Assembly: GCA_946965045.2 (NCBI GenBank) | Contig: OX337234.1 | Coordinates: 868,001 to 932,000 of the forward strand | Length of the DNA: 64,000 nucleotides | Direction of reading: 5' to 3' | Source of the DNA: Epithemia pelagica | Lineage: Eukaryota > Protista > Bacillariophyta | In this document: positions 1 through 51,021 of the stretch, in pieces | How positions within the stretch are numbered: the stretch's first letter is position 1 | Layout of the letters: each line of letters starts with the position of its first letter | Notes under the pieces: generated by a model | Told to the model about the DNA's origin: nothing | The model's database searches: none | The model's input: only the letters and a program-made list of their open reading frames with translations | Position numbers and translations under genes: made by a program

Positions 1-1962
1 ACGCTTGGTGACTTTCGCAAACGCCGGATGGGCGTCATCACCACGTGGCAAAGCAAGTTCCATGTTGATGTACGTGTCGTCGTACACCTCAGGAGTGAAG
101 TTAGTATCTGCCTCCTTGACCTCATCATTGGAGACTACGTCATGAAACTCAGCCGCGAAGTCGGCGTCATGTTCCAGGGGATCAAGGTCCCAGTCGTTGG
201 GCCTAGTTTTGCCTCCGTGAGGGAGGAAATGCGCAGCGTCATTAAGCTGTTGTTGGATGTTGGTGTCGAAACGAGCGAGTCGTTCTTTGATGTCGGTGGT
301 TTCCAGTTCCAAATTGGTAACACGGGAAACGGTGGTACGGGAAATCACGGTGCCTTGAGTGGTGAGCAACCAATAGGACATGAGACTACCGATCCTGTGA
401 GAGACTCCGAGCCACCGGCCAAGCTTGGTTTCACCCAACCCAGCATTGTCGTTGTACCAACAAGGGTCGTAAAAGGAGAAATCAAGGTACTCGGAGATAT
501 CAGGGGTCTCACCGGTAACGGCTTCAAGGCTGGTTCTGTCGTTGAGAGAGCCAGCTGAACTGGAAGTTCGTTGCATAATCTCACAGACCCATCTGAGCCC
601 ATAGTCCCAGAGTCGACGTGGAACGCGGCGACGATGCATGATACGAAACCAGCGTTTTCGTGCTTCGCGAATAACGCCTTCAACCTTGGACTGGTTATGT
701 CGATAGGGCTCGGCCTGTTGATGATCGATGTGATGTTTGCGGACCTGGTCCTGAAAGACCGTCCGTTTACCCGTTTGTTCTTGAGAACCATCGCTAATGA
801 TGGTATCAGGCACTCCAAAATCAGCAATAAACCGTTTGAGGGCCTCTCCGGCATCAGTTTTTCTTTCCATGGGGTACGCGACAACGAAATTGTAAGACGT
901 GGCAAATATCTGAGCGTGCCGGTTGCCGTCCAAAGTTTGATACCGACCATCCATGGTATCCGTGTAAACGATGCCGCGGACTCGCGGCCTTTCAAACATT
1001 CGATCTGCGCGGTACCGTCGCGCCAACGGGAGTATGGCGGACCGGACGACACGCTGTGTTGTCGCTTTCATTGTATTCTTGGCCTGAGCGATGCCAATGT
1101 GCCATCGCTCGCTGAGCATTGTTGCGGTCACGTCACCATGGCGATCTGTGGACTGAAAAGTCCTCTCGGATGGTATATCAAGACGTGGCAAGAACCGTCC
1201 ATCCACCTCGTCCACTTCGACAGCGCTAACAATACGATGAGCGATGTTCGAAGGGTGATACATCGTGGTATCGAGAACGTCGCTGGAGGCGATGGTTTGT
1301 ATGCTGTAATGTGGTTCTGCAACTCTTGTGACTGGGAATTGAACTGTTCTCGGATCCCAATCATGTGGTGAGGATAAGATGAGTCGAGGCAATTCCTCGA
1401 GCTCCTGTTGGGATGGCGTCCTGGATTCGAAGTATATCACAGTCCCAGCCGTTTGTAACGGGATGACAACATCCTCTGTTTCTATTTGAAGTGGTTTCTT
1501 GTCGTACGGATTGTCCTGTACGGTCACACCGTAATGTCTTGCTTGATTCTGATTGAGGAGGGTATGATCCAATCGATCACCCATCCAGAGTGCCTCATTG
1601 AACACGACAACGAACTCTTGCCCGTCGCCCTGCCTTGTCCAAACAGTGGCACCAGTGACAACGGGGACATTGGTGATTGCATCGTAGTCCTTTGAATACG
1701 GTGATACTTGGCATTCCTTGCCCGTGTATGACAATACACAACAATTTGCGCCGAGAACAATAGTGTCGGCGTGCGAATCAAGTTCAACTGTGCCATTGTG
1801 GATGCCATGATTTGGCTTGGCTTTCATACTGGAGGAAATGGTTCGGATACTGGACACGATCCTACAGATATATACTGGTCTCCCTACTCGATAATAGTCC
1901 ATAAGAAATCGACAGAGATAACTCACGATTCTTAATAAACATTCGAATAGGGAGGGCAACAG
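1..1962 (-). CDS. pol: Copia Pol (protease, integrase core; RT/RNase H lie beyond the edge)
   Basis: Manual translation; the ORF track missed it because it runs off the window. Segments read: ...VELDSHADTIVLGANC..., VYTDTMDG, IISDGSQEQ, KVEGVIREARKRW, and ELALPRGDDAHPAFAKVTKR at the edge. No stop in the segments translated. In frame with gag; first in-frame ATG at 1902. Confidence 0.9.
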   Translation of the reverse strand, partial: MLPSLFECLLRIVSYLCRFLMDYYRVGRPVYICRIVSSIRTISSSMKAKPNHGIHNGTVELDSHADTIVLGANCCVLSYTGKECQVSPYSKDYDAITNVPVVTGATVWTRQGDGQEFVVVFNEALWMGDRLDHTLLNQNQARHYGVTVQDNPYDKKPLQIETEDVVIPLQTAGTVIYFESRTPSQQELEELPRLILSSPHDWDPRTVQFPVTRVAEPHYSIQTIASSDVLDTTMYHPSNIAHRIVSAVEVDEVDGRFLPRLDIPSERTFQSTDRHGDVTATMLSERWHIGIAQAKNTMKATTQRVVRSAILPLARRYRADRMFERPRVRGIVYTDTMDGRYQTLDGNRHAQIFATSYNFVVAYPMERKTDAGEALKRFIADFGVPDTIISDGSQEQTGKRTVFQDQVRKHHIDHQQAEPYRHNQSKVEGVIREARKRWFRIMHRRRVPRRLWDYGLRWVCEIMQRTSSSAGSLNDRTSLEAVTGETPDISEYLDFSFYDPCWYNDNAGLGETKLGRWLGVSHRIGSLMSYWLLTTQGTVISRTTVSRVTNLELETTDIKERLARFDTNIQQQLNDAAHFLPHGGKTRPNDWDLDPLEHDADFAAEFHDVVSNDEVKEADTNFTPEVYDDTYINMELALPRGDDAHPAFAKVTKR

Positions 1963-3438
1963 TCAGTCCTTCTTAGACAAACGCTCACGGCGTCCTCCGA
2001 ACATGTTGCCTGCGTCATCCGGGACTTTGTTCTTGTCCGACGCATCTTCACACTCCTTGCATTCATCCTTAGAAGAAAGGGAAGCAATCTGGCGTTTCAC
2101 CTCTGACAATGAGTCAACAATGGATGACAATTCCGAGGCCTTGCGCTTGTTGTTCTTCCTGGAGCTCGCGCCGCTCTTATTTTTGCGCTTTCGTTCCTCC
2201 ATGACCTTATCCTTGTCATCGTTGGACAAGTCTTTCCAGTTCTTATAAAATCCAGTGAATATAGATCCATCTGGCATAAACACACCCTTCGTAGGGGCTT
2301 TTGACTTCTTTGCTGATAAGCCGCCACCACGGAGACGGTCAGCGCCGATTTCTGACACTTTGCGTGTCGTCTGGAACTCAGCAAGCTTGCTAACAGCTGC
2401 TGTCAAATGATTTGCAGCTTGCGTATACGTTAGCCCGTCCATATCAAAGCGGACTTCCAAGGCTTTGACGGTATCCTGTAGTTGTGAGTGTTGGACACGT
2501 TTTAACAACTCACGAATCTTCGCTCCTTCCGAGTATGCTTCCCCCTCGTCTGCATAAATGTTGAACATCTTTTGCAGACGATCGAGGAAGGAAGTAAAAG
2601 GCATCGATCGTTCGGAACGGTAGTGGAGTCCTTCCCTCATGCGGTCAGCAGTGGCAATACGTCGACTGGCATTGCCCTCACCAGCATAGTGGTCGCGAAG
2701 GGCGGCCATGTCGCGACGACCATCGGCGTGACGGGAAAGATGTTGGATCCACTGCTCGGCCGTTTCCGTAACAAGAAAGTTCTTCAGCAACTGGTGGACT
2801 TTGCGAGCATCAGCCTTGAAGAAATTGCCATTCAGCCTAGCGCAAGCCACCATCTTGGCTTGAAAATCGTTGCCAAAGTCGGTTGCGAAGTCTGGGTTCT
2901 CGTTGACACGAACGACGTATGACAAGGGAACGCCATAGACCCCAGGAATCGTGCTTAAGTAGTTGACAAAAGCAGGTTCCCAGTCTGGCCAACGTCGTTC
3001 GTCTTTAAACTTGCCTGGATCTGCGGCCTTGCTCACCGTGTCCACTTGGTCAGCCTCCACTTTACGAGTCGCGGCGCGTTCAATAGCGACCGTGAGGGCA
3101 GCCTTCATCGCGTCTGCATCGTTGATACCGTTGATAGTGGGTACTTGAGAGCATCGGTCAAAATCTTGAACCCAATGCATGACTCCCACTAACCATTTCG
3201 TCCGGCGCATTCCAAAGGTAATGCGTCCATTAGCGGCCGACCGCTTTTCGAAGCTTTCCGCCATGTCGCGCAGGTCCGTTTCAGTCACACCGATGAATCC
3301 AGAGAGATCATCGAAGCCTCCTTCATTGCAAATGGCATTTCGATGAGCGTTGTCTAGGAAGCCAATCCATTCCAGAACTTGATGGATAGGAGTCAAAGCA
3401 GGTGCGACGGGTGCAACGACTGGGGGAGCAGCGGCCAT
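1963..3438 (-). CDS. gag: Copia Gag (491 aa)
   Basis: ORF with diatom-Copia gag motifs (GVYGVPLSYVVR, ADGRRDMAALRDHYAGEG, FTSFLDRLQKMF, GSIFTGFY, C-terminal AGNMFGGR) directly upstream of pol. Confidence 0.9.
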   Translation of the reverse strand: MAAAPPVVAPVAPALTPIHQVLEWIGFLDNAHRNAICNEGGFDDLSGFIGVTETDLRDMAESFEKRSAANGRITFGMRRTKWLVGVMHWVQDFDRCSQVPTINGINDADAMKAALTVAIERAATRKVEADQVDTVSKAADPGKFKDERRWPDWEPAFVNYLSTIPGVYGVPLSYVVRVNENPDFATDFGNDFQAKMVACARLNGNFFKADARKVHQLLKNFLVTETAEQWIQHLSRHADGRRDMAALRDHYAGEGNASRRIATADRMREGLHYRSERSMPFTSFLDRLQKMFNIYADEGEAYSEGAKIRELLKRVQHSQLQDTVKALEVRFDMDGLTYTQAANHLTAAVSKLAEFQTTRKVSEIGADRLRGGGLSAKKSKAPTKGVFMPDGSIFTGFYKNWKDLSNDDKDKVMEERKRKNKSGASSRKNNKRKASELSSIVDSLSEVKRQIASLSSKDECKECEDASDKNKVPDDAGNMFGGRRERLSKKD

Positions 3439-3473
3439 CTTTTCTGTTCTTTTCTTTGAAGTTTAAGAGTTCC

Positions 3474-3818
3474 TGTTGTATAAGTAATACGAGATAATGT
3501 GGTCAGATACTGTCGCAGTGAGAATGCGCTCGATGCGGGGATGATCAGGCCCTGCCATTTTGGGGTTTTCAGGGAAACGAAACCAATCGGTTAAACACTT
3601 TCCCGACCGGACCCGAGAATCGTCTCACACGTCCTCATATGGAATTCGGTCATCTTCCGCGCTCTTTTCATACACTTAGCCATGTCTGCACTGGGTCTGA
3701 TAAACCGAAAGATATCCACAGCGGACGCTATTACTCACGGTGTAGTTCACAACGACAAGTTCAGAGCATTCAGCAGAAGAGTGAGCACCTCAAGGTGCGC
3801 TCCTCGCATAACGTTACA
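3474..3818 (-). repeat. Putative 5' LTR of the first Copia
   Basis: On the minus strand it begins TGTAAC (3818) and ends TACAACA (3474), the same terminal heptamer as the LTR of the second element. An end at 3498 is also possible. The partner LTR is outside the window. Confidence 0.55.
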
Positions 3819-4030
3819 CTAGGATACTTTATCGCTAAATACTGACTCGCCAACCTCTCATGCGCGCCAGTCGAACGCGTACAGGCGTGACCGGTACTCG
3901 CGCTACCACATTTATTCGTACTCACCCCCACGGCTCGACCTGGTCTCTCTCGACTCTGATACAAAATTCATGCAACGCACCCTCATTCATCACGGTGGTG
4001 GAGGTGCAGTGGTCCAGAACATCTTCTTTA

Positions 4031-4480
4031 ATGTCGTCTTCCTCCCACAAACGGCACCACCTCACTCAGAAGGAAGTAAGGGAGCTATTTGACGCTCGCA
4101 GTGTTTCCGAAAGGTCGACGGCGTCTGTTAACAACCAAGATGAAAGCATCGCCAAAAACCAAACCACCACCCCATCCACCAGCAACAACAATCCTTCGTC
4201 TCTGCCTCGTTTCGCTTCGTTTCCCACGGTCGATCCGCAAGCCTATGAAACCCCTATGGCGCAGAAGGATCCATTGGCCCATCCAAGTCGAACCTCCGAG
4301 GAATCCGAACCATCAACCTTTCTGAGCCTTGAAGCAGCTAGTTCCATGTCCACCATTCCATCGGATGCCTCATCTACTCGCTTCATGCGACGTCCTTCCC
4401 CCGACACCTTCTCCCAAGCCTTTCCCATTGCGGCTGTTACTGCTGGTGTTGCTCCCAATGAATTGCCGAACGATGAATAG
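4031..4480 (+). CDS. Element ORF-A (MSSSSHKRH..., S/T/P-rich, unknown function)
   Basis: The N-terminus is homologous to the ORF at 14339 in element 2 and sits at the same distance from the inner IR. Confidence 0.5.
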   Translation: MSSSSHKRHHLTQKEVRELFDARSVSERSTASVNNQDESIAKNQTTTPSTSNNNPSSLPRFASFPTVDPQAYETPMAQKDPLAHPSRTSEESEPSTFLSLEAASSMSTIPSDASSTRFMRRPSPDTFSQAFPIAAVTAGVAPNELPNDE

Positions 4481-5030
4481 CAAACAAAGCTGTTTGTATT
4501 TCCCGCAGACGGCGCTTCATGATTTGGTTCGAGACCACGGATCTCAATCTGCCATGGAATTCTTTCTCCGAGCCATGACACTCAAGGATGATCATACTAG
4601 TGCCATCACGTCCTCATCGTCCTGGACCAAAACACAGATACTACAGCATTTGTGAGATTATGGATTGTCACGTTATACCGTTTTGCGTCCCATTCGCGCC
4701 TTGTCGGCCGGTCAACATGTTCGACTGTGGTTGGCCCACAAATCGGCCGTGTCCGCCAACAATTGGCAAAACAACAAAGCCGCATGGGGATTGTCGTTGT
4801 TAGTCTTGGACGAAATTTCGGAAAATATGGACGTCGAAACGCGAGATAGTTTGATTCAACTCATTAATAAGCCTCAGTCGGAAGGTGGCACACGCCATGA
4901 CCCTGAATGTGGCTGGGGAGGTGCTGTAATTGCCGTGTCTCATGATCCTGGCTATTGTCGCGAATATCAGCCAACTCTGATATGGAGTCTTGACAGACAG
5001 GGTTTACGAGTTGAATATCCCAATGTGTAG
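4473..5030 (+). pseudogene. ABC ATPase (ABC-F-like) domain fragment inside the transposon
   Basis: Q-loop YFPQ, signature LSAGQ, Walker B/D-loop LLVLDEISENMD, H-loop VSHD. One in-frame TGA at 4653-4655; no Walker A. Confidence 0.75.
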
Positions 5031-5105
5031 GAATTAAAATACCATCATGATTTTATCTATGTAGTTGACGCTTTCTGCAGTTGACGACAAAAGCTCTGAA
5101 CAGTT

Positions 5106-5741
5106 TCATGCAGCTCCTCCTGACGACGTGGAATTCCTAGTATCGTTAGTTTTATTGGGGTTTGAGAGTTTCAAAAGGTCAGTCTCGGACAGCATGACTT
5201 CCCGAGTACGGAAACGATCCTTGGTATACCGCGTGTCCCAAGCATTGTCTGTTTCGGGGAACCAATGATACAAATGGCACTCTGACGTACTAGAGTCAGG
5301 ACAGCAGTGACAACATGAGCAGTATGGAAGGAGCATGTGGCTTTCCTCGGCATTGTTCGTACAAGGACGAACCACAAAGCGATTCATTGGAGGAAATTTT
5401 TGATTGTTGCAAAATGGCTCTAGCTGAACATTGTCGGCCCATTCATTGCCACCGTGGAGAATAAGTGTCTCTAATTGGGTTGCATTCTGCAATGACAGCA
5501 ACTTTCCTTTGAATGCGTTGTGGTAGAGTACAACAGTCTTAAGCTGCGGTGTACTTGGACGAAGATTAAATGGCAGTGGGCCCGCAATCGAGTGAAGGCC
5601 GCCCATGGGACTAATTGGTAGTTGAAAGAGGAGTGGCCGGAGGGTTTCGGTTGTGTCGAAAAAGGGATGCTTGAGGTATTTCGACAGGGTCATCTGGTTT
5701 GGCGTTTTTACTTTGTTGAAGGCTTGAATGAAGAGTGCCAT
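5106..5741 (-). CDS. ORF with a short LRR-like fragment and a Cys-rich stretch, inside the transposon
   Basis: LKTVVLYHNAFKGKLLSLQNATQLETLILHGGN fits LxxLxLxxNxFxGxL; convergent with ORF-A. Confidence 0.4.
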   Translation of the reverse strand: MALFIQAFNKVKTPNQMTLSKYLKHPFFDTTETLRPLLFQLPISPMGGLHSIAGPLPFNLRPSTPQLKTVVLYHNAFKGKLLSLQNATQLETLILHGGNEWADNVQLEPFCNNQKFPPMNRFVVRPCTNNAEESHMLLPYCSCCHCCPDSSTSECHLYHWFPETDNAWDTRYTKDRFRTREVMLSETDLLKLSNPNKTNDTRNSTSSGGAA

Positions 5742-6268
5742 GGTCGAGAGAAGGGTGGTTCTGGCAAGATTCCGCCATCATGGAAGCATCGTGGGTAGTA
5801 TCATTGTCGTTGGTGTGGCTGGGGTTGGAGGTGCGGGTAGCCATGATGGATGTAATCGTCCTCACTAGTTTGCCTCCGTGGTGGCTCTGTGGAGGTGAAA
5901 TGCAGTTTGTATCAGAGTCGAGAAATTGGCGATTTGGGGCCCTCGAGCCGTGGGGGTGACTAAGGGAATGCACTTAAAAAGTGCGACTGACCAAGTCGCC
6001 CCATGCTTGGGGGTAAGGAAAGTGGGGTCGCTTAAAGGTCGTTAAAAGATCAATATTTCAGGTCGCTTTAAGAGGTCGCTGATGAATCGCTACGAAGCCT
6101 GTCATTTCCATTCTCGATCCGTTGGCTGCACCTTTGTCGTCGTCGTTGGAATCTCGTGTTGTGGCGGCAATCTTCTCAGCTAAAAGCACTTGGAGAGAGA
6201 AGTAGAGAGAGAGAGACGACAACGACGAGACTGTGAAAGTGTGCGCGCGCAAGTGTCCCCCATCCATC

Positions 6269-8518
6269 ATGCCGCCGTCTTCTTCTTCTTCTTTGTCTCT
6301 GCCTCGTCCACCACCACCACGAACTGTGAATCATTCTCCATGGCTCGCCAGTTTGGATTTGTATCGCAAGGTTCCCGTCGATCTCTTGGAAGGTTCGCAA
6401 GAAGGCAAGGCCGTATCATGGATTGCCTTGCTGGTACTCCTGACCTTGTTTGTGTTGGAAACCAAACAATTTTTGACGCCCCAGCACGTGACGGACATTT
6501 TTTTGGACACGTCGTGGTCCACACGACCAAACCGAAATCCACAACAACAGGATGCAGTGCAATACGTTCGAGTCGATTTCAATATCACACTCTTGGATTT
6601 GTCCTGTTCCTTTGCCACGGTCAATGTCGTGTCCTTTTTGGGCACGCAACTCAATATTACCAGTCACATTCAACGAATTCCCCTCCAAGATGGACTCGAT
6701 CCCACCACGACGACGACCAGTACCAATACTCCACCCGCACTCTTGCATCGCTTTGGCTTTGCCACACGACAGACATCACAACAACAACAAGAGTCGGTCT
6801 TGTTGCACGATCCCAGTGTGACGGCCACCTTGGAGGAATTGCATGCCAATGGCAAGGATTCCGTCAGTTTCAATCCAGAAACCTTGGAGTATGCCTTGGA
6901 AGAATATGAATTTGTCTTTGTCAAGTATTTTGCCAATTGGTGCAGTCATTGTCGAGCCTTGGCACCGACCTGGGAACGTCTCGCCGAAGTCTTGCACGAT
7001 ACCGAACCCCATACACCCCTCGCCACTGTCCTCCAGGCAACGGCCACCAATTCGACCAACTCGACCACCAATGCCACTACACTCATCACCACCACCTCGG
7101 ATCCGGCGGAGGAAGATCCCGCACAATTGGAACAACAAGCCGAACATTTGCAACAGCAAGATTACAGTGACGAAGAATTGCGACAAGCCAAATTGCTCGA
7201 TTTGCCCGTTTTGATTGGAGAAGTGGATTGTGTCGAACATCAAGACTTGTGCTGGGACGAAGAGATTAGGGGATATCCCACCATGGTGTAAGTACCAAGT
7301 CTAGTAGTATCATTGTAACGAAGCACAGGATGGAAACAAGCAAGCGAACATAACGACGATTCAAAGAGATTGCGTGTTGTGAGGAAGAGTTTTAGGAGGA
7401 GGTGCTTTGGGTGTGAGCCTTTCCCTTTAGTCCATCTATACTCACGGTGCCTTTTTCTATGCTTGATTTGCTGGTGGTGTTTTTTACCATTGTCCTTCTC
7501 GTTATTCTTGGTTTGTTTGGTTGTTGCTTTCTGTGTGTCTCTGCTCTCCTCTGCCTCTAGATTGTACGTCAATGGCGAACGGTTCAAGGGCGGCGTGTAT
7601 TATGGTGACCGGACCGTGTCCAAATTGATTCAATTTCTCTTGTGGGCTGAAGAAATGACGGAACACGACGAACCGGACAAGATGCAACAACATGCCCAAG
7701 CCGCCTTGGCCAAGCATACCAACATGACAACCGCCCATGCCGAATGGTTGCAATCCATGAATCATAGCCGGGCCTTTCACAATGCTCGATTGGAATGGAA
7801 TCCTAGCGATCATCCCGCCTGTCAACTCGTCGGATCGCTCTACATGAATCGCGCACCTGGACACTTTTTTATTCAAGCCACGTCGCCGCATCACGATGTC
7901 GATCCACACAGTGCCAATCTATCCCATGTCATTCATCACTTGTCGTTTCATCCGATTTCGGCCGCCGAGGCGGCTGCCGCGGAGGATCCAAACCATGTAC
8001 CGCAACCACTCGTGTCATCCGAACCACTAAGTATCCCCGATTTTGTACCGAGCCATTATGTCAAGGCCGTTGCTCCCTTGGACGGCCATGCCTTTGTCGT
8101 GCCGGAAATTCATCAATCCTGGCACCACTATCTCAAACTGGTATCGACCAATGCCGATCGGTATCACGTCATGCCCAGCAGTCAAGTGTCCTTGTATCGC
8201 GACGATCACGTCCCCGAGGCCAAATTTGTCTTGGATATTTCCCCCATTGCCATTCAATGGAGGACGCAACACCAACCATGGTATTCCTACATTACCTCCC
8301 TCATGGCCATTTTGGGAGGAACCTTTACCGTCGTGGGCATGTTGGAATACGTCGTCTCGTCCGCCTCCCGACAGATTCGACAGTCCACGACACGACGGCC
8401 ACGACCACGACCACCGTCGGCCACGGCGGTACCGGCTCGCAGCAATCCCAAACTTTCCTACGCGACACCAGCCGCCATGAGCCAAGGCAATGGGCCTCGG
8501 CCTCGTCCACCTCAATAA
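6269..8518 (+). CDS. PDI-C / ERGIC-ERV41/46 family protein with a thioredoxin domain; 2 exons (6269-7287, 7561-8518)
   Basis: ERGIC N-terminal LDLYRKVP plus TM segment, thioredoxin WCSHC, COPII-ERV domain (CQLVGSLYMNRAPGHF, DISPI, AILGGTFTV). A GT-AG phase-2 intron at 7288-7560 joins GYPTMV-LYVNG. Confidence 0.9.
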
Positions 8519-9093
8519 TAGTCTTGCATAGAGAGGGAAATGGACGATAATGAGTTGTTGTTGTTCTTGTTGTTGTTCTTGTTGTCAATAGTTTGGCGTA
8601 GTTGTTCCTACAAAACAAAGGAGTCACATCCGTTTGTCTGAGTAAATTGCCATAGAGGACAAGGTTGGTTTCGCGCTTATGTTAATCAAATCCAGGATAG
8701 ACAGCAACCCAAATGCACGAATGATGGAAGCCTTCTTGTATTCCCTTGTCTAGTTGGTGCTGGGCCATCATTCATCTTGATCACTCATTGAGACATAATG
8801 TGGAAGGCATGTTATATTGGAGGGTTTATATTCTACAATGCCAAGAAGCTCAAACAAGCTCGAGAAGCATTGCGAATCATATCTTCTTCTAAAAAACTGG
8901 GTGTACATCGAATTATCATCAAATGAATGGATCAGGGTTTCCTCTAATGTCCAAAGCCGATACAGTGTAGTTGCCGGTGTGACCAACCATATTGTACATG
9001 CATGGAACTGTGAACGTCGACTGTTTCCAGTCCAGTCGACGACACAGAAAGGGAATCCCGGTGGAATATCCAGTTCCCCTCTGCCATCTTGAC

Positions 9094-9489
9094 TTAGCGG
9101 CGACCAATTTGACACCACGAGCGCTTTCGCAACGTTCTGGTGAGCCATGGAGATAAAGTGGTGGGCCTGTGCAACCGGCGACCAAATACACTGGATGCCC
9201 CGACAACTACCGATGACACAACGAGAACTACCGATGACACAACGAGGGCTCCCGCGATGTTGTCGAGGGCTCGCGCGATGTTGTCTGCACCTCCTTTAAT
9301 TTGATTGCCGACTTCCTTATGAGCCTCGGCAAACGAGTTCATCGACTTTGCGAATTCCTTATGAGCCTCGGCAAACGAGTTCATCGACTTTGCGATGGCG
9401 AAATGTGCCCAACTAAGTGTGCTGGAAGCTTTGGCAACCGCCCCAAACGGCCAACCCGCCTTTTTGGATTCCTTAATGCACTTGCGCAT
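9094..9489 (-). CDS. Small hypothetical coiled-coil/membrane protein with an internal 42-bp duplication
   Basis: AKSMNSFAEAHKE occurs twice (9313-9395), followed by a hydrophobic V/S-rich segment. Confidence 0.35.
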   Translation of the reverse strand: MRKCIKESKKAGWPFGAVAKASSTLSWAHFAIAKSMNSFAEAHKEFAKSMNSFAEAHKEVGNQIKGGADNIARALDNIAGALVVSSVVLVVSSVVVGASSVFGRRLHRPTTLSPWLTRTLRKRSWCQIGRR

Positions 9490-10510
9490 TTCATTCTGTA
9501 TCGATTGCAGCGAGACAAAAGCCAGGTGAGAGAAACTGGAAAAGATATGAGACCGGCGAAGCTACATTGCCGTGATTGAAGGATGGACTGAATCCGTTTC
9601 CACCTTCCACCCGCTTCATCCAGAAGATAATGACGCATGATATAACCATTTGTCTGCTTTCTTCATCAATAACATACCTCGAGATCCGTCAAGTCCAATG
9701 ATGACTCCTTCGGAGTGGTGTTGGTTTCGTTTGCACCGCTCATGTCGTTCGCTGCTGTTTGGAATTTTTGTGATAAAGAACACAAGGATCGATCGAGAGC
9801 GTCAAGAATCCAGTTTCCGAAACTAAGCTCGCCGCGCGTGAACAGCCCGCCGGTATTCGAGTCGGCCGGCCAGGGGGTCACCGGTCACATCAACAGAAAC
9901 TCGCGCTCTATCATCTATCATGGTGGCACCTTTCCAATGTGATGAAGGACGAGGCAGTGACAAGCTTCCGTAATGACCGCGGGAACAGAGCAAGAGGTAG
10001 AACAGGATTGGAGAGAGCTTCGCTGTCCTGTCATTTTTTTCTTCTTTCCCTTCGAATGTCATTGAACCGGTAATGACCAAGGTTGCCGAACTGGTCACAC
10101 CAGAAGTAACACATCGTCCACAATGACAATCCGATCCTCCTCATGAAAAAGAACTATCCCGAACGTTATGGAGGTGGCCATAGTCACTTACATGAACCAG
10201 AAGACCCCTTCGGCTTATCCTCAACGCAGGAACCGGCCACTGAGAAGAATGCGAAACGGGACATTCTTTCACCATTTTGGTCCCGTCCGAGTTCGACGAT
10301 GATGGAATCATTCAGGTAAGATTCCATACTTGTTTCAGTTGTCATGGTTCAAATCATGCCTTGCTTGCTGTCCCATGTGTTGATGTTTCGGGCATCGTTG
10401 CAGAGCATTGAATAAACTCGAAGCGACTCCCGCGCCACACAGTCGTCTCCGTTTCCTCTGTGCGGACAAACAAAGACATTGGCAAGCGTAAGGTAATGTG
10501 TGTGGTCCAA

Positions 10511-11170
10511 TGCAGCAAATGAGTCTCTATGGTGGGAGACGGTGGGAATGAGATGATGTTGGCACGAGTTGCAAAATATCCATCGCATGACGGTCGGTCG
10601 TCATGTAATGCAGCAGATGAGTCTTTACGGTGGGAGACGTTGGAAATGAGATGATGTTTGCACGAGTTGCAAAATATCCATCGCGTTTCTCTCGTTCCTT
10701 GCCGTATAGACGTATTTGTTGAATCGATCGTCGAAGGTCACTGTTCGTTTCTCGGCGTCGATCGTCATCTGTCATTTGCGGAAACCCAGTCGGTCGTCAT
10801 GTAATGCAGTAGATGAGTCTTTACGGTGGGAGACGTGGGAATGAGATGATGTTTGCAACACATCCATCGCGTTTCATTCGTTTCCTCCTGTATAGACGTA
10901 ATTGTTGAATCGCTCGTCGAGGGTCACGTTCCGTTTCTCGGCGTCGATCGTCATCTGTCATTTGCGGAAATCCAGTCGGTCAACATGCAATGCAGCAGAT
11001 GAGTCTTTACGGTGGGAGACGAGATGATGTTGGCACGAGTTTCAAACTATCCATCGCGTTTTCATGGTCTTTGGCCGTAGAGGCTTCTATTATTTGTTGA
11101 ATGGGACGGCAAAGGTCACGTTTCGTTTCTCGGTGTCGATCGTTTGCTCCAATTCTGTCGGTCGACATGA
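10511..11170. repeat. Degenerate tandem array of 4 units (about 98, 196, 186 and 180 bp)
   Basis: Units start TGCAG(C/T)A(G/A)ATGAGTCT at 10511, 10609, 10805 and 10991 and share GGTGGGAGACG and ATCCATCGC; the three long units also share TTTCTCGG(C/T)GTCGATCGT. Confidence 0.9.
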
Positions 11171-12016
11171 ACAGGTGAGTTGCTGTTCTGTCCTCCATCA
11201 CTTGATGTGATCACGTTCTTCTTACGATTGTTCCTGCTTGGTTACTTCTCACCTCTATACTCCTCAGAAGATGCTTTTTTTTTAATCGTGGTGTTTTGGT
11301 GGCCCACACGGTGATACAAACATTGATTCTAGGTAGTATAGTAACATCCATCATCCTGCTCCAACCTCGGATCACTGTCCCATCATACAGCAGCGTCTGG
11401 AATTTGCAACTTTTGTAGTCGAGAACCGTTTGAGTTGTGGTGCGCCTATTTTGTAGGTCCGAATCCACGTGGACCAACGAACCGTGAGAAGAGTCTCGTA
11501 GATTGGAACGATCGAATGGTCCAGGTCACACTGTTTGGGTTTGGTGGTGTTTGTGATTTTCTGAGCCACAGTGCGGATACATCCAATCCATTCTGACGAC
11601 CAAAGCCTTCCAATCCAGGCGCCGTTGGTGACATGTGCACCACCACCAACGGACCTCCGTACCCCCTAGCGGGGGTGAGTCATGAGGATTAGTGAACCAG
11701 ATCTGGTGAGCATTCTCTATCTCACCCAAGGCGCGACCTTCAAAAATTGGCGATTTCCCAGTCCTGACACAAACACCAAACAACCACCACACACACACTA
11801 CGGAGCAAATCTGGTTGTCGTCATATCGTCACCAAAGCACCTTTGCACCTCCTTCCAAGACGTCAGCACCATTCCTCTTCCCTCTCAAGAACCTACGACG
11901 ACGGCAGTTGCACCGGGAAACCCTCAAAGCGTCCGCAGTAACACGCCAAGTACCACCCCACTTCCCATCTACCATACCAACACAGAAAGCAATCGTTTCA
12001 TTCTTCCAACAAAGCT

Positions 12017-13291
12017 ATGGCGTCGTACCAAAGGTCCCCAAGTGTTGCTGGCTATGCCTCCGAGCCACCCGAAGCCATTGAGTTGCTGGAAACTGCTATC
12101 AACAAGGGCTTTTTGCATTGGCACGGCAAAACTGCCCACCAATGGCAAGTCGATACATGTAAAGCCCTTCTACACCGCCACACTGCCCCTGCCCCCATTC
12201 GTTCGCCTACTTTGCGTCCTCTCCTCCTTGTACGTTCTACCGGAGGTGGGAAATCCTCCGTCCGCGATGTATGTGGTTTCCTTTGTGGCGGCATTACCGT
12301 GACAATTGTCCCATTACTAAGCTTGTCGGCCGATCAAACCGCCAAGCTTATTGAAGTATGCACCAAGCAATATCTGCACAGCCGCGTCCATGTGTTTAAT
12401 CTTGACGTGCTGCGTTCCCCTGACGTCAATATAACACTACAGTCTGCACTCGAGCGACTTTCCAACAATCAATCAAACAAAAAAAGAGTCCTACTATTTT
12501 CTTCCCCACAGAAAATAGCCAACGACCGGTCTTGGCAACGAACTCTTACCAAGTGTGCATCCAAGGGCGCTCTCCGCTTTGTTGCAATCGACGAGTGCCA
12601 CTTGTACGCTGGCCACGGTGTCGAATTTAGGCAAGAGTTTGGCGAACTGAAAGCGGCTTTCCTTGACAAACTGGAAACGCATTCTCCAATTCCCATTCCC
12701 ATTCTCTTTATGACGGCTACTGCCTCCCTGTCTATGGTCAAGGATCTTGAGTTTCTCACTGACCTCTCCTTTGATCGAACAAAGGACTTTGTCTGGCCCC
12801 ACCAGCATTCCGGAGTCCATCGCCGGAACATCATGATTGACTTGACTTTCAGAGACTCTCCTCTTCGTCGAGTTAAGTCGGACCTGGTACGCATCTCTCG
12901 GGTCCCCGGAAACCGTAAAATGATTGTTTATTCGAATTCGAGAAAGGCCATAATGCATTTGTATGAGCAAAGTCGGCAGGAGCTAAACCGTCGTGGAATC
13001 CACAAAGACATTGTTGTGGTCCACGGCAACATGTACAAAGAGCAGAAGTTTCACAACACCGAACTTTTTGCTGGACCGCCGTTGGTAGATGAGTGTCCTA
13101 CTACAAGAAGGCTCCTACGCTTCGACCCAGTAGCCTACTACGCCACTGCCGCAACAACAAGTGCGGGGCTGGATTGCCACGAAGTGGACCGGGTTCTATT
13201 CCATGGATTCCCTCCTACAATTGAAGACCTCCTACAATGCTCCGGTCGATGTGGACGAGCTCCTGAATCGGAGTTGTCGACGCATTGTTAG
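12017..13291 (+). CDS. RecQ-like SF2 helicase core (424 aa)
   Basis: Motifs I TGGGKS, Ia VPLLSLSADQ, II DECH, III MTAT, IV IVYSNSR, V TSAGLD and VI QCSGRCGR. Ends right after motif VI (no RQC/HRDC). Confidence 0.9.
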   Translation: MASYQRSPSVAGYASEPPEAIELLETAINKGFLHWHGKTAHQWQVDTCKALLHRHTAPAPIRSPTLRPLLLVRSTGGGKSSVRDVCGFLCGGITVTIVPLLSLSADQTAKLIEVCTKQYLHSRVHVFNLDVLRSPDVNITLQSALERLSNNQSNKKRVLLFSSPQKIANDRSWQRTLTKCASKGALRFVAIDECHLYAGHGVEFRQEFGELKAAFLDKLETHSPIPIPILFMTATASLSMVKDLEFLTDLSFDRTKDFVWPHQHSGVHRRNIMIDLTFRDSPLRRVKSDLVRISRVPGNRKMIVYSNSRKAIMHLYEQSRQELNRRGIHKDIVVVHGNMYKEQKFHNTELFAGPPLVDECPTTRRLLRFDPVAYYATAATTSAGLDCHEVDRVLFHGFPPTIEDLLQCSGRCGRAPESELSTHC

Positions 13292-14339
13292 ACTCGGGAG
13301 TCTGTTGGGTTGTATCTGACGATTCCGCATGTTTCCGTTTGTTCGTTGTTTTGTTCGTGAAGCGTCGTTGTTTGGAGGTGCCGGTGGGCGACCGAGATAC
13401 ACCAGCTGTGTAATTTTTTGCCCGTCGCATCATTCCGGAACAATAGTTGGCCACCAGCGTCAGCGAAGACTTTTTGGATGCCTCAAGGGTCGGGGTAATC
13501 AAAACCAGGGGTGTGTTTGCTGACGCAGCAGGCCCTGGGTTTTTGCATGGCAATGGAGGGACCCGACGGAGAGGGACTAGATACGAACCTTCACGAACTT
13601 TGGTTACTTTCCCTTTGAAGAGGTTAGGGTATTGTTGGTCCTGGTTGGTGGAAGATGCTGCAGGAGGAGGATCTTTCGGTGGACCTTTCTTTGGTGGGGC
13701 TTTCTTTGGTGGAGCTGTTGTCGTAGGGACTTTTGTCAGATGGAGGGTCGGTGCCGCAGCTGTTGTGGTATCCGGAGGGGAAGGTGAAGGGTCCTCACCA
13801 TTGGATGCCTCAGCAGGGACTGTTCGCTCCATAGCAGCAAGCAATTTCAGAGCCTTTTGAGGGGACGATTGGGTCCCAAACTGGATTTGCCCAACTGAAT
13901 CCCGATTGTGCCAAAGGTCAATGAACAGTGGTTGGGCTCTGTCGTTGGTAGAAGGATTGGATTCGTTGGATTGATTGGATGGATGCGGGGTTGGTTCGGG
14001 GCGTGGCCGAGGAGGAGGAGCAGAGGCATTACTTGTGGTTGTGGATAAGTCACTTGTACCTGCAGTTGGAACCATCGTACTAACCATCGTACTGTGTGAA
14101 TCCACGGTTGCTTTCGCATGAGGTGTGATGAAGGGAGGGACCGGAGTAGGCTGAACGGCATCAGATTGGCCATCAGAGACATTCGTTCTCGATGAAGCGA
14201 GAGATTCCATTCCGGCGATATAGACGCTTGATTCTTGTTTTGCTTCGGAGGCATGGCGATCCACTGTGCCCCGAGAAGCATAGGCCTTCCTAATGTCTTG
14301 CTGGGAACTGCGATGGCGTTTGTGCGAAGAAGAAGACAT
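13215..14339 (-). CDS. Element ORF-A (MSSSSHKRH..., low complexity, unknown function)
   Basis: Homologous N-terminus to 4031-4480; overlaps the helicase 3' end by 77 bp. Confidence 0.5.
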   Translation of the reverse strand: MSSSSHKRHRSSQQDIRKAYASRGTVDRHASEAKQESSVYIAGMESLASSRTNVSDGQSDAVQPTPVPPFITPHAKATVDSHSTMVSTMVPTAGTSDLSTTTSNASAPPPRPRPEPTPHPSNQSNESNPSTNDRAQPLFIDLWHNRDSVGQIQFGTQSSPQKALKLLAAMERTVPAEASNGEDPSPSPPDTTTAAAPTLHLTKVPTTTAPPKKAPPKKGPPKDPPPAASSTNQDQQYPNLFKGKVTKVREGSYLVPLRRVPPLPCKNPGPAASANTPLVLITPTLEASKKSSLTLVANYCSGMMRRAKNYTAGVSRSPTGTSKQRRFTNKTTNKRKHAESSDTTQQTPESNNASTTPIQELVHIDRSIVGGLQL

Positions 14340-14881
14340 TGTAGGGACAGTAAGCACGGCTCCGTACCTCCATTGCCGCGATGAATGCAGTTGGTGGTTT
14401 GGAGGTTTGTGTCAGTACTGGGAGCGCAGAGGTCGCGCCTTGGGGGTGAGTAAGAGTTTGCACACCAAAAGCACGACACATATGCGACCCGACAACTCAC
14501 CCCCGCTGGGGGGTAGGACCTCCGGTACGGTCGATTCCGAGATGACCGCCTTGACTAGTTTCCGCAAGAAACGATTGCTAGGTAGGCCAAATCATGTAGG
14601 AGTACAATTGTAGAACGCAACTACTCTAGACGGATTGCCGTAACTGACTCATCCTAGTGGCAAAGCGAAAAAAGGAGGAAACAATCGGACTGTTCTTTGC
14701 CTTTGTGTCCTTGGGCCCATGGGATCCAACAGTGTGTCCTCCCTGTAGTCGTAGAGAGTGTCTGGAAATCCTGACACCCACCCACGTAGAGCAGACGGTA
14801 TAACACAACATGCCTGTTTGCTTGGGTCCCAGAGCATGGGGCCCACCGTGTTGTGACTGGTAGCTGGCTAGAGGTGTTCTT

Positions 14882-15785
14882 CTAGAGAGGTGGTTGTTTG
14901 TGTTGTGGTGGTGATCCAAACTCAGTGTTGTGTGTGGGGGCGGTGCTACTGGCACTGTGGTGGTTACTGTTGGTTGGGTTCGTTCCTGGCACCGTCCTGG
15001 TTTGGTTCGTCGGTCGTGTGTCCTTTTGGGTGGCCGTGCGAGTTGTCGTAGGTGGTGGTTTCGTCTCCTCGTTTGAGTGGTTGCTGGTAGGCTCCTCCTG
15101 CAATGTCGTCCTTGTCGTCGGTTCCAGTAGTAACGTGCTGCTGCTGCTGCTGCTAGTATTATTGGAGGAAGATTTCCACCAATAGGGTGGAGCCTGCCGC
15201 AAGGCTTGATGAATGGCGTGATAGGAGGTGACCATGGTTTCCAAGGATGGATTGGTTTTTCGAAATTTGCCCTTGCGATTCCCCCGCAAGGCAATGGATT
15301 GACCACATCCCGCCACTGTTAAATGTATGTCATGGATTGGGCCAGAGACGGCCAACATCCCAAAAACACAAGCAAGCAAGCATGTGAGCGACTACCAGGA
15401 GAGAAGTCATATCCAATATCATTGGATATCCCCATCGACCCACCCACACCGACACACACTCTCGGTACATACCCGGACAACTCCAATGATGGCAGGCGTA
15501 GTCGTCAATGCAGGTTTCACAAAAACTGTGGGCACAGGCCGCCAAGGTTTGGGGATGATGCAAGAGACCGTGACAGAGGGGACACACCAAGGCTTGGGCC
15601 ACTGCGGCCATACTGGTGCGCATGGAATCCGTCAGGGACGACGGTGCCAATTCGGCAGTATGCCAACCAGCCGTAGTAGGATCAGGATCATCAGGATGAC
15701 GGAGTTTATCCAACCCTGACGTTGACGAAGATGACGACGACGAAGCCGATGGTTTGCGTTTCTTGGGATTGACGGGAAGAACCAT
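14882..15785 (-). CDS. RING-finger protein (BRCA1/BARD1-like N-terminal RING); 2 exons (15785-15473, 15315-14882)
   Basis: CPLC...CAHSFCETCI...CP|VAGC after removing the GT-AG intron at 15472-15316; low-complexity tail. Confidence 0.7.
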
Positions 15786-32311: not shown

Positions 32312-33752
32312 ATGTCGGACTCAGTCAGAACATTGATAGCGATAAGGAACTATTACATCCAGCAAACTACAAAACTACAAAACCATTCTCGACAAGCTTG
32401 CTGACAAAACTGGAACAAAACGATCCCGCGCAAGATGTAGTAGCGGTAAACTACCTCGATGCACGAGGACCGGAAATAACCAAGCTCTACCATGCCCTTC
32501 AGCAAAACACTGTCTTGGAGGAAATTTGTTTCAATTCCCCTATAGCGATGGAAGAAGGATCCGATGAGTTCCTTCGTATACTCCCAGAGGGAAAATTTCG
32601 GCTCAAATCGCTTTTAATGCATCGTCGAGAGAACTTTTTTGGAGAGTATTTGTCTCCCGAATTTTCTGGTTTCTCCTGTGAGCTCTTACGCATCCTTTCA
32701 ACTGTCTCATGTACTAAGAACAGTTTAGAAACACTGGCTTTGATAAATGGCACTTTTGAAGGACCATGTGGAAAGAAGGAGATGGTGTCAAAGAATCTCT
32801 GTTCGACATTTTTGTTGGCATACCATCGTTGCGTGATGTTAGCCTTACCGAGGAAAGAATTCTTCCAAATGGCTTACTTGGCCTTGCACAAGGACTTGCC
32901 CAGAGGAGCAGTGTGGTGGATTTGGATCTCTCGCATAACCACCACGTGGGCAATCCTATTGTGTGCTCAAGCCTTGCTCAAGCACTTGTGGCAAACAAAA
33001 CACTCAAGAAACTAGATATGGTCGACTGTGATCTTAATGAAAGTGACATGAACGCTCTTTTGACGGCATTGCAAGAGAACCAAACTCTCAAGGTTTTAAA
33101 TATCGATTACAACAATTTTACTCGCCATGGAATTGAAACAATTCTTGTTCCGTTGTTGCCTGGTCTGAACCTGAAAGTGCTGTATCTAAAGAAGAATTTT
33201 GGAGGCTATTTTTGCCATGATGCTACGGAAAAAGAATGTGACAAACTGGTCGGGAGAATAGTCATGTCATTGCAAAACAGTTCTACCTTGAAAGTGTTGG
33301 ATCTGGGCTATTCTTACCACACTTAATTATCCGATGAGGCTCGTTCACTGTACCCTTTGGTCCTTCAGGAAAAACGAATGGCTGCTGGAAAGCCCTTCTA
33401 CAGCACATTGGATCAACGATTGCAACTCTACTTGGGTGCAGCTCACCGTGGATTCAATAAGTTTTGGCAATTGCGCCTGGCTGAAAACGAGTCTCGACGA
33501 ACCGCAGACCGGAGCACGGTAGGTCCAAGCCTCGTACCCTTGCGATTGTTGGTCCCTCGAATATTACATCGCCTCGATCAAGCCTGCCATTCGCGCGAAC
33601 TCGAGGGAGACATGTATTTTTATGTGCGCAAGCTGGTGGAATGGGGAGACTTTGGTCTACGACAAGGATCCTACAAACGTGGTCATTCTACGAGGTACAG
33701 AACCCCATCTTTCCAGAGAGCTACTTTGTATTATTGGGGCAATCCACCATGA
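32312..33752 (+). pseudogene. RNI-like LRR protein pseudogene (paralog of 43551-44903 and 51022-52362)
   Basis: Compared with the paralogs: frameshift just after the homologous ATG, 1-bp deletion at ~32770 (GGAAAGAAGG vs GGGAATGAAGG), and in-frame TAA at 33324-33326. Confidence 0.85.
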
Positions 33753-43550: not shown

Positions 43551-44903
43551 CTAAAAGCATGCACCACGTTTGCACGCCCCTTGTCGCGGACCAAAGTCTC
43601 CCCATTCCGCCATTTTGCGCACATAAAAATACATGTCTCCCTCCAGTTCGCGCAAATGGCAGGCTTGATAGAGGCGATGCAATATTCGAGGGACCAACAA
43701 TCGCAAGGGTACGAGGCTTCGACCTACACTGTTCCGGTCTGCGGTTTGTCGAGACTCGCTTTCAGCCAGGCGCAATTGCCAAAACTTATTGAATCCACAG
43801 TGAGCTTCGTCCAAGTAGAGTTGTAATCGTTGATCCAATGTGCTGTAGAAGGGCTTTCCAGCAGCCATTCGTTCTTCCCGAACGTCCCAAGGGTACAGTG
43901 AACGAGCCTCATCGGATATTTCAGCGTCGTAAGAATAGCCCAGATCCAAAACTTCCAAGGTAGAATTGTTTTGCAATGACATGACTATTTTCCCGACCAG
44001 TTTGTCACATTCTTCTTCCGTAGCATCATGGCAAAAATAGCCTCCAAAATTCTTCTTTAGATACAGCCCGTACAGGTTCAGACCCGGCAGCAACGGAACA
44101 AGAATTGTTTCAATTCCATGGCGAGTAAAATTGTTGGAATTGAGATTTAAAACCCTGAGAGTTTGGTTCTCTTGTAATGCCGTCAAAAGAGCGTTCATGC
44201 CACTATCATCTAGATCACATCGGGCCATAACAAGCTGGGTGAGTGTTTTGTTTGCGATAAGTGCTTGAGCAATGCTTGAGTATACAATCGGATTGCTCAC
44301 TGTGCCATCCCCTGGTAGTGATAACCTTTCCACACTGTCATTCTGGGCAAGTCCCTGTGCAAGGCCAAGCAAACCATTTTGAGGAATACCTTCCGAATGA
44401 AGCCAGACATTACGTAAGGATGGCATGCGAACAAAAATGTTGAACAGAGATTCTTTGACATCATCATCTTCATTCCCGGATTCTTCAGGAAGAAAGTCAC
44501 TATGCAAATCAAGTGTTTCTAGACTGTCCCTGGTACCCGGCGCAGTTGAAAGGATACGGAAGAGCCCACGGAAGAAACCGAAGTGGTTGGGGCACACAAT
44601 TTTAAGAAATCTGAGCCGAAACTTTGCCTCCGAGAGTATCCGATAGAACTCGTGGGATCCTTCTGGCATAACTATAGGGAAGGAGAAAAGCAAATGGTCC
44701 AAGACTGTGTTCTGCTGCAATGCATGGTAGAGCTTGGTAATTTCGGGTCCTCGTGTATCGAGACGATCTGCCCATACGTCCGTCTGCGAGGGATCGTTTT
44801 GTGCCAGTTTGGCCAGCAAGCTTGTCGAGAACAAGAAATTGGAGGATGGAATCGTCCTCCTCCTCAAAACGTTATTGTCGCTATCACTGGCTGAGCCTGA
44901 CAT
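43551..44903 (-). CDS. RNI-like LRR protein (NLRC3-like repeats, no NACHT)
   Basis: Intact ORF; repeats such as LQENQTLRVLNLNSNNF and LQNNSTLEVLDLGY. ATG chosen by homology with the paralogs. Confidence 0.8.
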   Translation of the reverse strand: MSGSASDSDNNVLRRRTIPSSNFLFSTSLLAKLAQNDPSQTDVWADRLDTRGPEITKLYHALQQNTVLDHLLFSFPIVMPEGSHEFYRILSEAKFRLRFLKIVCPNHFGFFRGLFRILSTAPGTRDSLETLDLHSDFLPEESGNEDDDVKESLFNIFVRMPSLRNVWLHSEGIPQNGLLGLAQGLAQNDSVERLSLPGDGTVSNPIVYSSIAQALIANKTLTQLVMARCDLDDSGMNALLTALQENQTLRVLNLNSNNFTRHGIETILVPLLPGLNLYGLYLKKNFGGYFCHDATEEECDKLVGKIVMSLQNNSTLEVLDLGYSYDAEISDEARSLYPWDVREERMAAGKPFYSTLDQRLQLYLDEAHCGFNKFWQLRLAESESRQTADRNSVGRSLVPLRLLVPRILHRLYQACHLRELEGDMYFYVRKMAEWGDFGPRQGACKRGACF

Positions 44904-45282
44904 ATGGACTTTCAACAAGGGTGATACGGCGTCAACAAATCTAGCGGTAACATGAGAAGGACCTTCTTTCGACTTTTTTATTTGTGATCTCATTTGTAAA
45001 CGCGACCTAAAGACGAATGGTTCCGGCAACTAAGATAGGTACCTACGTAGGTAGTTTTGTTAGAGTAACAGAATAGGAGTTCGGGGAACTCCTCCGTTCT
45101 GGTTCAAGAGACCAGTCGAAAGTTTACTTTCTGTATCCCAGGTGCCAAGGATCTTGGCTCCACAGCAGCAGATAGTCATTTCTTGTGTGTGACTAAATGC
45201 TGGACTGTCCCAGCCGCAAAGCCGCACTGTCTCTTCTCTGATCTATGGGAAAGATGACCCAGATTGTTTCTCTAGTACCTAG

Positions 45283-45576
45283 TGTTGGAAATAATGATGA
45301 AGACGGAAAAATGATCCACGAGTCCTCAGAGCCACCCGGCGACCAAGTTGAGACAATGACGAGAACTACTTATCGAAGCAGTCACGAACAATCACGCGAG
45401 CGAGAAGGTAAGCGCGTTACGTTCGCTGACGTGGTAAAATACGGGAAACCAAAGACGAGCGAGGCGAAAAAGACGAGAGCTCATTCTTTGGAGATAATCA
45501 AGAAAGTAAAGTAAAATTACGTTTTACATCTACGACGATAGCGACGAAGCTGACGGCATCCTTGCATCGTACAACA
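45283..45576 (+). repeat. 5' LTR
   Basis: Direct repeat of 50709-51002; TGTTGG...TACAACA. Confidence 0.97.
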
Positions 45577-50940: not shown

Positions 50941-51002
50941 AATTACGTTTTACATCTACGACGATAGCGACGAAGCTGACGGCATCCTTGCATCGTACAA
51001 CA
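50709..51002 (+). repeat. 3' LTR (the pol ORF reads into it, stop at 50940)
   Basis: Direct repeat of 45283-45576. Confidence 0.97.
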
Positions 51003-51021
51003 CCTAGGATGCACCCCGTCT

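Follow-up and report, generated by a model that had tools for sequence, protein, structure and literature searches.

A deletion derivative of a helicase-encoding DNA transposon, probably of AcademH type, in the diatom Epithemia pelagica

Within a 64-kb stretch of the genome of the diatom Epithemia pelagica (contig OX337234.1, 868,001 to 932,000; hereafter the window, the whole of the DNA that was analysed, in whose own numbering positions are given), a cut-and-paste DNA transposon occupies the segment 11660-14515 in the form of a non-autonomous copy with an internal deletion. The complete element is 7.6 kb long and carries a gene for a RecQ-like superfamily 2 (SF2) helicase and, facing it, a gene for a protein with the Pfam domain DUF6589 that is predicted to be a DDE transposase. 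Taken as a whole, the data are very probably best explained by an internally deleted copy of a helicase and DUF6589 transposon of AcademH type residing in a diatom, AcademH being a lineage within the Academ superfamily that is reportedly found in animals and fungi. That the family belongs to AcademH is in itself probable, as judged by published descriptions and not by Academ reference proteins.

The copy in the window is 2.9 kb long (2,856 bp) and is bounded by terminal inverted repeats (TIRs) of 21 bp that are complementary at 20 of 21 positions, with TA first at either end. The 21-mer is found at two sites only in the window, with an expectation of 0 from shuffled sequences. Outside the TIRs there is a perfect 9-bp direct repeat, the target-site duplication (TSD), and an earlier note on this DNA, which described these ends from the sequence alone, is borne out. 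The symmetry of the element continues inwards to ~115 bp, with two further pairs of subterminal inverted repeats (11720-11739 with 14430-14449, and 11756-11774 with 14405-14423). Between the ends lies a helicase open reading frame (ORF) at 12017-13291 (+) that matches the Pfam domains DEAD and Helicase_C, its closest solved structures are those of RecQ1, BLM and RecQ5, and the top model in NCBIfam is recQ_fam at a score far under the cutoff. A second ORF of 380 amino acids at 13215-14357 (-) faces the helicase and has no Pfam match, and a transposase domain was looked for in the window copy and none was found, in agreement with the same note, which had described an element with a RecQ-like helicase core opposite a second ORF and devoid of a DDE transposase. 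The N-terminal motif of this second ORF is common to the paralogues P0123-P0129. When the element was removed in silico no long ORF was restored across the site, and there is thus no sign of a disrupted gene.

The parent of the window copy is found in the ENA assembly ERZ21939226, in which the window helicase is 99% identical to a protein of 641 amino acids (P0001) encoded on a 318-kb contig. The full copy on that contig (L001:5546-13143) has both ends as in the window copy, is 7,598 bp long and has a 9-bp duplication of its own, TCCAAGGGG, free of mismatches. The window copy corresponds to element positions 1-1607 of L001 (99.4% identity) joined to positions 6347-7598 (99.2%), nothing between them being aligned, and it has therefore lost 4,739 internal bp, with microhomology of a single base (T) where the two parts meet. 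The earlier note had taken the element for a deletion derivative, and the alignment to the 7,598-bp full copy makes this directly visible. Only 17 substitutions and one 2-bp indel separate the two over 2,856 bp, so that both the deletion and the insertion are recent. The helicase is broken 8 codons past motif VI, with the C-terminal ~220 residues gone, and the transposase fragment on the other side of the junction is collinear with an ORF of 882 amino acids in the full copy (L001:10337-12985). As the catalytic part of the transposase has been lost the window copy has no mobility of its own; it is an ordinary dead derivative, of use mainly as an insertion-polymorphism marker. In L001 the transposase gene is itself split into ORFs of 882 and 848 amino acids by a frameshift near L001 10556-10580, which may be a real inactivating mutation or an error of long-read assembly.

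The family to which these copies belong is large and diversified. On large ENA genome contigs there are 17 helicase clusters that are ~55-63% identical to the window helicase, in addition to P0001 at 99%, and L001 was studied together with nine further loci from the same assembly (ERZ21939226). All ten of the helicase loci fetched lie within the same kind of ends, and all ten full or deleted copies of which both ends were read start TACCCCC; of L003 only the left end remains. In the full copies the helicase gene stands tail to tail with the second gene, and in the intact relatives the helicase has 677-729 amino acids and the second protein 1,476-1,732. Duplications were read over nine sites, with 9 bp at five (the window copy, L001, L011 and two deduced from L012 and L013, between which a pair of duplications is swapped) and 10 bp at four (L002, L004, L010 and L014), the check for copies with TSDs elsewhere having thus returned eight insertion sites besides that of the window. 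The genome contains at least a dozen lineages of the family, which are ~51-82% identical at the protein level, as well as near-identical copies and deletion derivatives, and the repeated activity suggested in the earlier note is supported. Two of the loci, L012:8722-16530 and L013:8722-16530 (ctg1227l and ctg1351l of ERZ21939226), hold identical 7,809-bp copies whose flanks are swapped, L012 reading CCGGTCACT-element-CGCTCCATT and L013 reading CGCTCCATT-element-CCGGTCACT; such an exchange is what ectopic recombination between two copies would leave, and a mis-join in assembly over a 7.8-kb identical repeat would give the same picture. The features of the window copy and the further copies are collected in the table.

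Features of the transposon copies in the window (positions in window numbering) and further copies from assembly ERZ21939226
Feature or copy	Position	Strand	Length	Duplication	Remarks
TSD, left copy	11651..11659	.	9 bp		GGACCTCCG; identical to 14516-14524; directly abuts the inverted end
TSD, right copy	14516..14524	.	9 bp		
TIR, left	11660..11680	+			starts TACCCCC; same as the L001 left end
TIR, right	14495..14515	-			same as the right end of the L001 copy
Subterminal inverted-repeat blocks, left	11720..11774	.			pairs I2 and I3; 90-95% complementary to 14405-14449
Subterminal inverted-repeat blocks, right	14405..14449	.			pairs I2 and I3
RecQ-like SF2 helicase gene	12017..13264	+			416 homologous codons of ~674, then 8 foreign codons, stop at 13291
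Deletion junction	13264..13265	.			element positions 1608-6346 gone (BLAST against L001:5546-13143)
Transposase gene, N-terminal part	13265..14340	-	~358 codons		starts MSSSSHKRH; without the DDE core
Second family member	3920..6015	.			distant, truncated, different interior
L002			7,816 bp	10 bp	second gene a single ORF, 1,488 amino acids
L004			7,832 bp	10 bp	second gene a single ORF, 1,558 amino acids
L010			7,829 bp	10 bp	second gene a single ORF, 1,476 amino acids
L011			7,526 bp	9 bp	second gene a single ORF, 1,673 amino acids
L012			7,809 bp	9 bp, putative	second gene a single ORF, 1,732 amino acids
L013			7,809 bp	9 bp, putative	second gene a single ORF, 1,732 amino acids
L014			4,107 bp	10 bp	deletion derivative; second gene truncated, 647 amino acids

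Each terminus of the window copy (11660-11677 and 14498-14515) also forms a small palindrome, made up of ACCCCC, four bases and GGGGGT, which when folded as single-stranded DNA gives -6.3 kcal/mol with z of about -3 in the window subfamily. As a feature of the whole family the terminal hairpin was considered and set aside as weak, the stem being clear in the window subfamily and weaker or absent in L002 and L004.

Read data provide a further view of the locus, from assembled contigs of four runs on the same organism that were placed on 10600-15600. The summed contig depth, which is not equivalent to copy number, is ~70-250 over the flanks, ~250-350 over the interior of the element and 3,700-13,000 over the outer ~100 bp of each end, an excess on the termini (11602-11768 and 14441-14607) of ~15-100x the flanks. 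Many distinct contigs join 11695/11696 to 14449-14467 by way of short and varying fillers, which suggests a large population of miniature derivatives that have only the termini in common. Where other letters are called within the element they are those of the L001 version, and the interior reads therefore come mostly from the full-length form. A contig of 1,205 nt from run X2 and a matching contig from run X3 pass from the left flank, followed to 11655 and ~2% diverged, to the right flank from 14604, and the length of the X2 contig leaves no room for the element. An allele without the insertion is thus suggested; the mapping of reads for an empty site, as proposed in the earlier note, gave these contigs but did not recover the exact empty-site sequence. 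In run X4 (another sample, from 2024) the left flank is covered at 100% identity and the contig depth is zero on 11769-14440; this could reflect an RNA library or a strain that lacks the window subfamily, and nothing is concluded from it.

The helicase is an ancestral component of the element and not captured cargo. Every full copy has a helicase of 641-729 amino acids between its ends, and the convergent pair of a DUF6589 gene and a DEAD/Helicase_C gene is also present in three environmental relatives, in which the transposase has just 22-27% identity to that of the diatom. When elements are compared in pairs, the identity of the helicases drops in step with that of the transposases. In a maximum-likelihood tree the six helicases of this genome form one clade (100/100), and a long branch, also with 100/100, parts the helicases of the element type from the three canonical RecQ proteins included, which carry Zn-binding, RQC or HRDC domains; the tree covers these canonical proteins and the element-type helicases, with those of AcademH and KolobokH left outside it. 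Pfam gave no match to RecQ_Zn_bind, RQC or HRDC in a full helicase of 681 amino acids or in its C-terminal 222 amino acids. Both parts of the proposed phylogenetic check therefore point the same way, as the helicase does not group with the canonical RecQs (three in the tree) and is multi-copy. The nearest named homologues are transcripts of Attheya, which accords with a diatom host. More distant relatives with the helicase and DUF6589 pair are L005:7636-14998 (JGI 3300021915) and L006, the ends of which start CACACTGTAG, and in the metagenomic relatives L007, L008 and L009 the ends and duplications could not be placed exactly.

The second protein is encoded by one ORF of 1,476-1,732 amino acids in L002, L004, L010, L011 and L012, and matches Pfam DUF6589 at 37.8 and 31.3 bits against a cutoff of 27. 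Five full or partial transposases and 25 distant relatives, when scanned against Pfam, matched DUF6589 and nothing else, with no match to MULE, Transposase_mut or SWIM, and XPG_N and XPG_I gave no match in the transposases, the helicases or the 25 distant relatives. The full-length members thus carry a transposase of DUF6589 type, with no MuDR or MULE domain, which settles the check on MuDR that the earlier note had set out. When the transposase was the query in two word-indexed protein searches, the output consisted mainly of paralogues on large ENA contigs, those fetched being from ERZ21939226, and no fungal or animal relatives were reached. A profile built from seven paralogues was searched against 1.84 billion representative proteins, giving 726 relatives of which the nearest 150 appear to be environmental or from protists. 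The residues that are invariant or nearly so among relatives of ~20% identity include D615, E816, D861, H911, D1113 and E1117 (numbering of P0121), and the motif after the second D is GDLHxxFH, with no clean C/DxxH.

An AlphaFold2 model of the 641-residue core (P0121:530-1170), made from 36 diverse sequences, has a predicted local distance difference test score (pLDDT) of 88 and a predicted template-modelling score (pTM) of 0.87; an earlier model, for a core of 1,001 residues and made from 7 close paralogues, reached a pLDDT of 40 and was discarded. In the model D615 (D86) is on strand 1, D861 (D332) lies just past strand 4, and E1117 (E588) is on a helix that is preceded by an all-helical insertion of ~200 residues. 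The best structural matches are the P element and Hermes transposases, and in the AlphaFold DB and ESM Atlas the matches are DUF6589 proteins, with a probability of 1.00, E-values down to 8e-14 and template-modelling (TM) scores up to 0.69. These structural matches are commonest in Basidiomycota, Mucoromycota, Cnidaria and Mollusca, with the bacterial IS66 transposases next and distant, and the identity of the transposase to the animal and fungal DUF6589 models is 9-15%. The confident model thus shows in the core of the second protein the fold of a DDE transposase, RNase H-like and split by a large all-helical insertion as in the P-element, hAT and RAG1 proteins. The P element and hAT elements (Hermes) differ from the present family in having 8-bp duplications and no helicase, and no match to either was seen at the level of sequence. 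For DUF6589, an uncharacterised Pfam family, these results support the function of a DDE transposase's catalytic core and supply candidates for the catalytic residues.

The family is best assigned to AcademH, by the length of its duplication, by its helicase, by having no XPG nuclease and by the hosts in which DUF6589 occurs. Elements of the AcademH kind have duplications of 9 or 10 bp and those of AcademX 3 or 4, a difference that has been tied to the carriage of a helicase as opposed to a nuclease (PMC10045372), and AcademH has been found in animals and in Basidiomycota, Ascomycota and Mucoromycota (PMC10799480). What the earlier note had said of AcademH, namely a RecQ-like helicase with TSDs of 9-10 bp in animals and fungi, agrees with both papers. 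The diatom family likewise has inverted ends, 9- or 10-bp duplications and a predicted DDE transposase with a RecQ-like SF2 helicase besides it, and no XPG nuclease, the mark of AcademX, was found. The groups in which DUF6589 proteins are commonest (Basidiomycota, Mucoromycota, Cnidaria and Mollusca) coincide with hosts reported for Academ and AcademH (PMC10799480). The family differs from AcademH in its host, a diatom with relatives in other marine protists, and in the identity of only ~9-15% to the animal and fungal DUF6589 proteins. A literature search found no report of Academ in diatoms, and the data fit a known kind of transposon recorded from a new host, and not a new type of element.

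A number of points weigh against this assignment. A literature search with DUF6589 and PF20231 returned no text that ties the domain to Academ, and membership of the superfamily, likely as it is, has been judged by indirect features and not from Academ proteins or AcademH terminal sequences. The flanks of the distant relative L005 share only 8 bp (ACTTACTC), an apparent 8-bp duplication, and the length of the duplication may be variable across the wider family. The transposase of L001, the closest full copy, is frameshifted, so that L001 may not be the source of transposase for the window subfamily.

It is possible to place the elements outside Academ altogether, in a DUF6589-type DDE superfamily or deep lineage of marine protists in which the helicase was independently acquired or kept and the length of the duplication is a coincidence. 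The comparison with Academ by description and not by proteins leaves room for this, as do the low identity to animal and fungal DUF6589 models, the environmental or protist origin that the nearest 150 profile matches appear to have, and the 8 bp of L005. It is nonetheless unlikely, given the DUF6589 scores over the Pfam cutoff, the structural likeness to DUF6589 proteins of fungi and animals at a probability of 1.00 and E of ~1e-13, and a duplication length, helicase and absence of XPG that all suit the published definition of AcademH. A bolder proposal is that the helicase and DUF6589 elements of diatoms and marine protists are a deep lineage apart from the Academ elements of animals and fungi, in which the helicase is essential, for example in unwinding the G/C-palindromic termini; this is a speculative and improbable idea. 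If it were true, a cut-and-paste transposon would depend on a helicase of its own, and co-divergence down to ~22% identity together with a huge excess of miniatures that have only the ends in common would indicate an old, active and experimentally tractable system in algae that can be transformed.

The known transposon groups that resemble the family fare worse. A Pack-MULE, that is a Mutator-like element (MULE) with a captured fragment of a host RecQ gene, would share with the present elements duplications of ~9 bp, deletion derivatives and relatives with foreign fragments, yet no full-length member has a MULE, Transposase_mut or SWIM domain, and the helicase is inside every full copy, always convergent and co-diverged to ~22-27% identity, which is ancestral and unlike a recent capture; the transposase domain is not that of a MULE, and this reading is given very little credence. 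The case for a Kolobok element with a helicase, comparable with fungal KolobokH or Kolobok-1_CCri of a red alga, is that the best structural matches, P-element- and hAT-like, suit a group that includes Kolobok. Kolobok elements have TTAA duplications of 4 bp and a THAP domain. In the present family each of the nine duplications has 9-10 bp and a sequence other than TTAA, no match to THAP was found in Pfam scans of the family proteins and the motif GDLHxxFH is not a clean C/DxxH, so that Kolobok, failing on both duplication length and THAP domain, is highly improbable. This holds even with Kolobok present in diatoms and with some of its lineages bearing RecQ helicases, in Kolobok-1_CCri on the complementary strand (PMC9587614), the same opposite-strand arrangement as here. 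A cellular RecQ paralogue that lies between repeats by chance would account for the set of RecQ-type motifs and for the matches to RecQ1, BLM and RecQ5, and is refuted by the structure of the copies: there are 17 helicase clusters, all ten fetched loci are within transposon ends, the RecQ_Zn_bind, RQC and HRDC domains were not found, the split from the three canonical RecQs has 100/100 and the window copy is truncated. It can be considered close to impossible.

Returning to an AcademH-type element, a mechanism can be proposed that starts from the anatomy of the copies, the parent copy and its deletion, the 9-10-bp duplications and the fold. The whole element has the 21-bp inverted ends, the subterminal repeats and the two convergent genes, for a helicase of ~670-730 amino acids and a transposase of ~1,500. 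The transposase would bind the ends, cut the element out and insert it where the target has been cut with a stagger of 9-10 bp, and the helicase would be an accessory that acts in unwinding of the end or target, or in repair. The window copy, without the catalytic core and the helicase C-terminus, would be mobilised by proteins from intact copies, and its internal deletion may have arisen from interrupted gap repair following excision.

A diversified family in a diatom would carry the AcademH lineage into the stramenopiles. Transcribed homologues are found in transcriptomes of Attheya and Pedinella, and many related sequences occur in environmental assemblies from the sea. As diatoms are transformable, the near-intact copies could serve to test what role a helicase has in a cut-and-paste transposon.

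A second member of the family in the window had been placed by the earlier note at 3921-6015, and it is real but distant, with 66-76% identity to the ends of L001, L002 and L004, the likeness being confined to the ends. On the minus strand the sequence of its right end, at 6015, is TACCCCCAAGCATGGGG, and its left terminus is gone; as ~60 bp are missing on the left there is no readable target duplication. The ORF 3860-4480 retains the transposase N-terminal motif MSSSSHKRH. The interior of 3920-6015 is otherwise unrelated, with a weak, sub-threshold ABC/AAA Walker-B match in the ORF 4665-5030, and may be a case of gene-fragment capture.

Other repeats are present in the window. Just upstream of the insertion site, at 10509-11143, there are repeats of ~98-190 bp, tandem or dispersed (families D6, D9, D12 and D14). 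Further along, 45282-45576 and 50708-51002 are a 295-bp direct pair, 100% identical and 5.4 kb apart, that resembles the long terminal repeats of retrotransposons, and the blocks 32377-33683, 43556-44832 and 51006-52299, in both orientations, are 75-91% related, which suggests that they are further copies of one or more retroelements.

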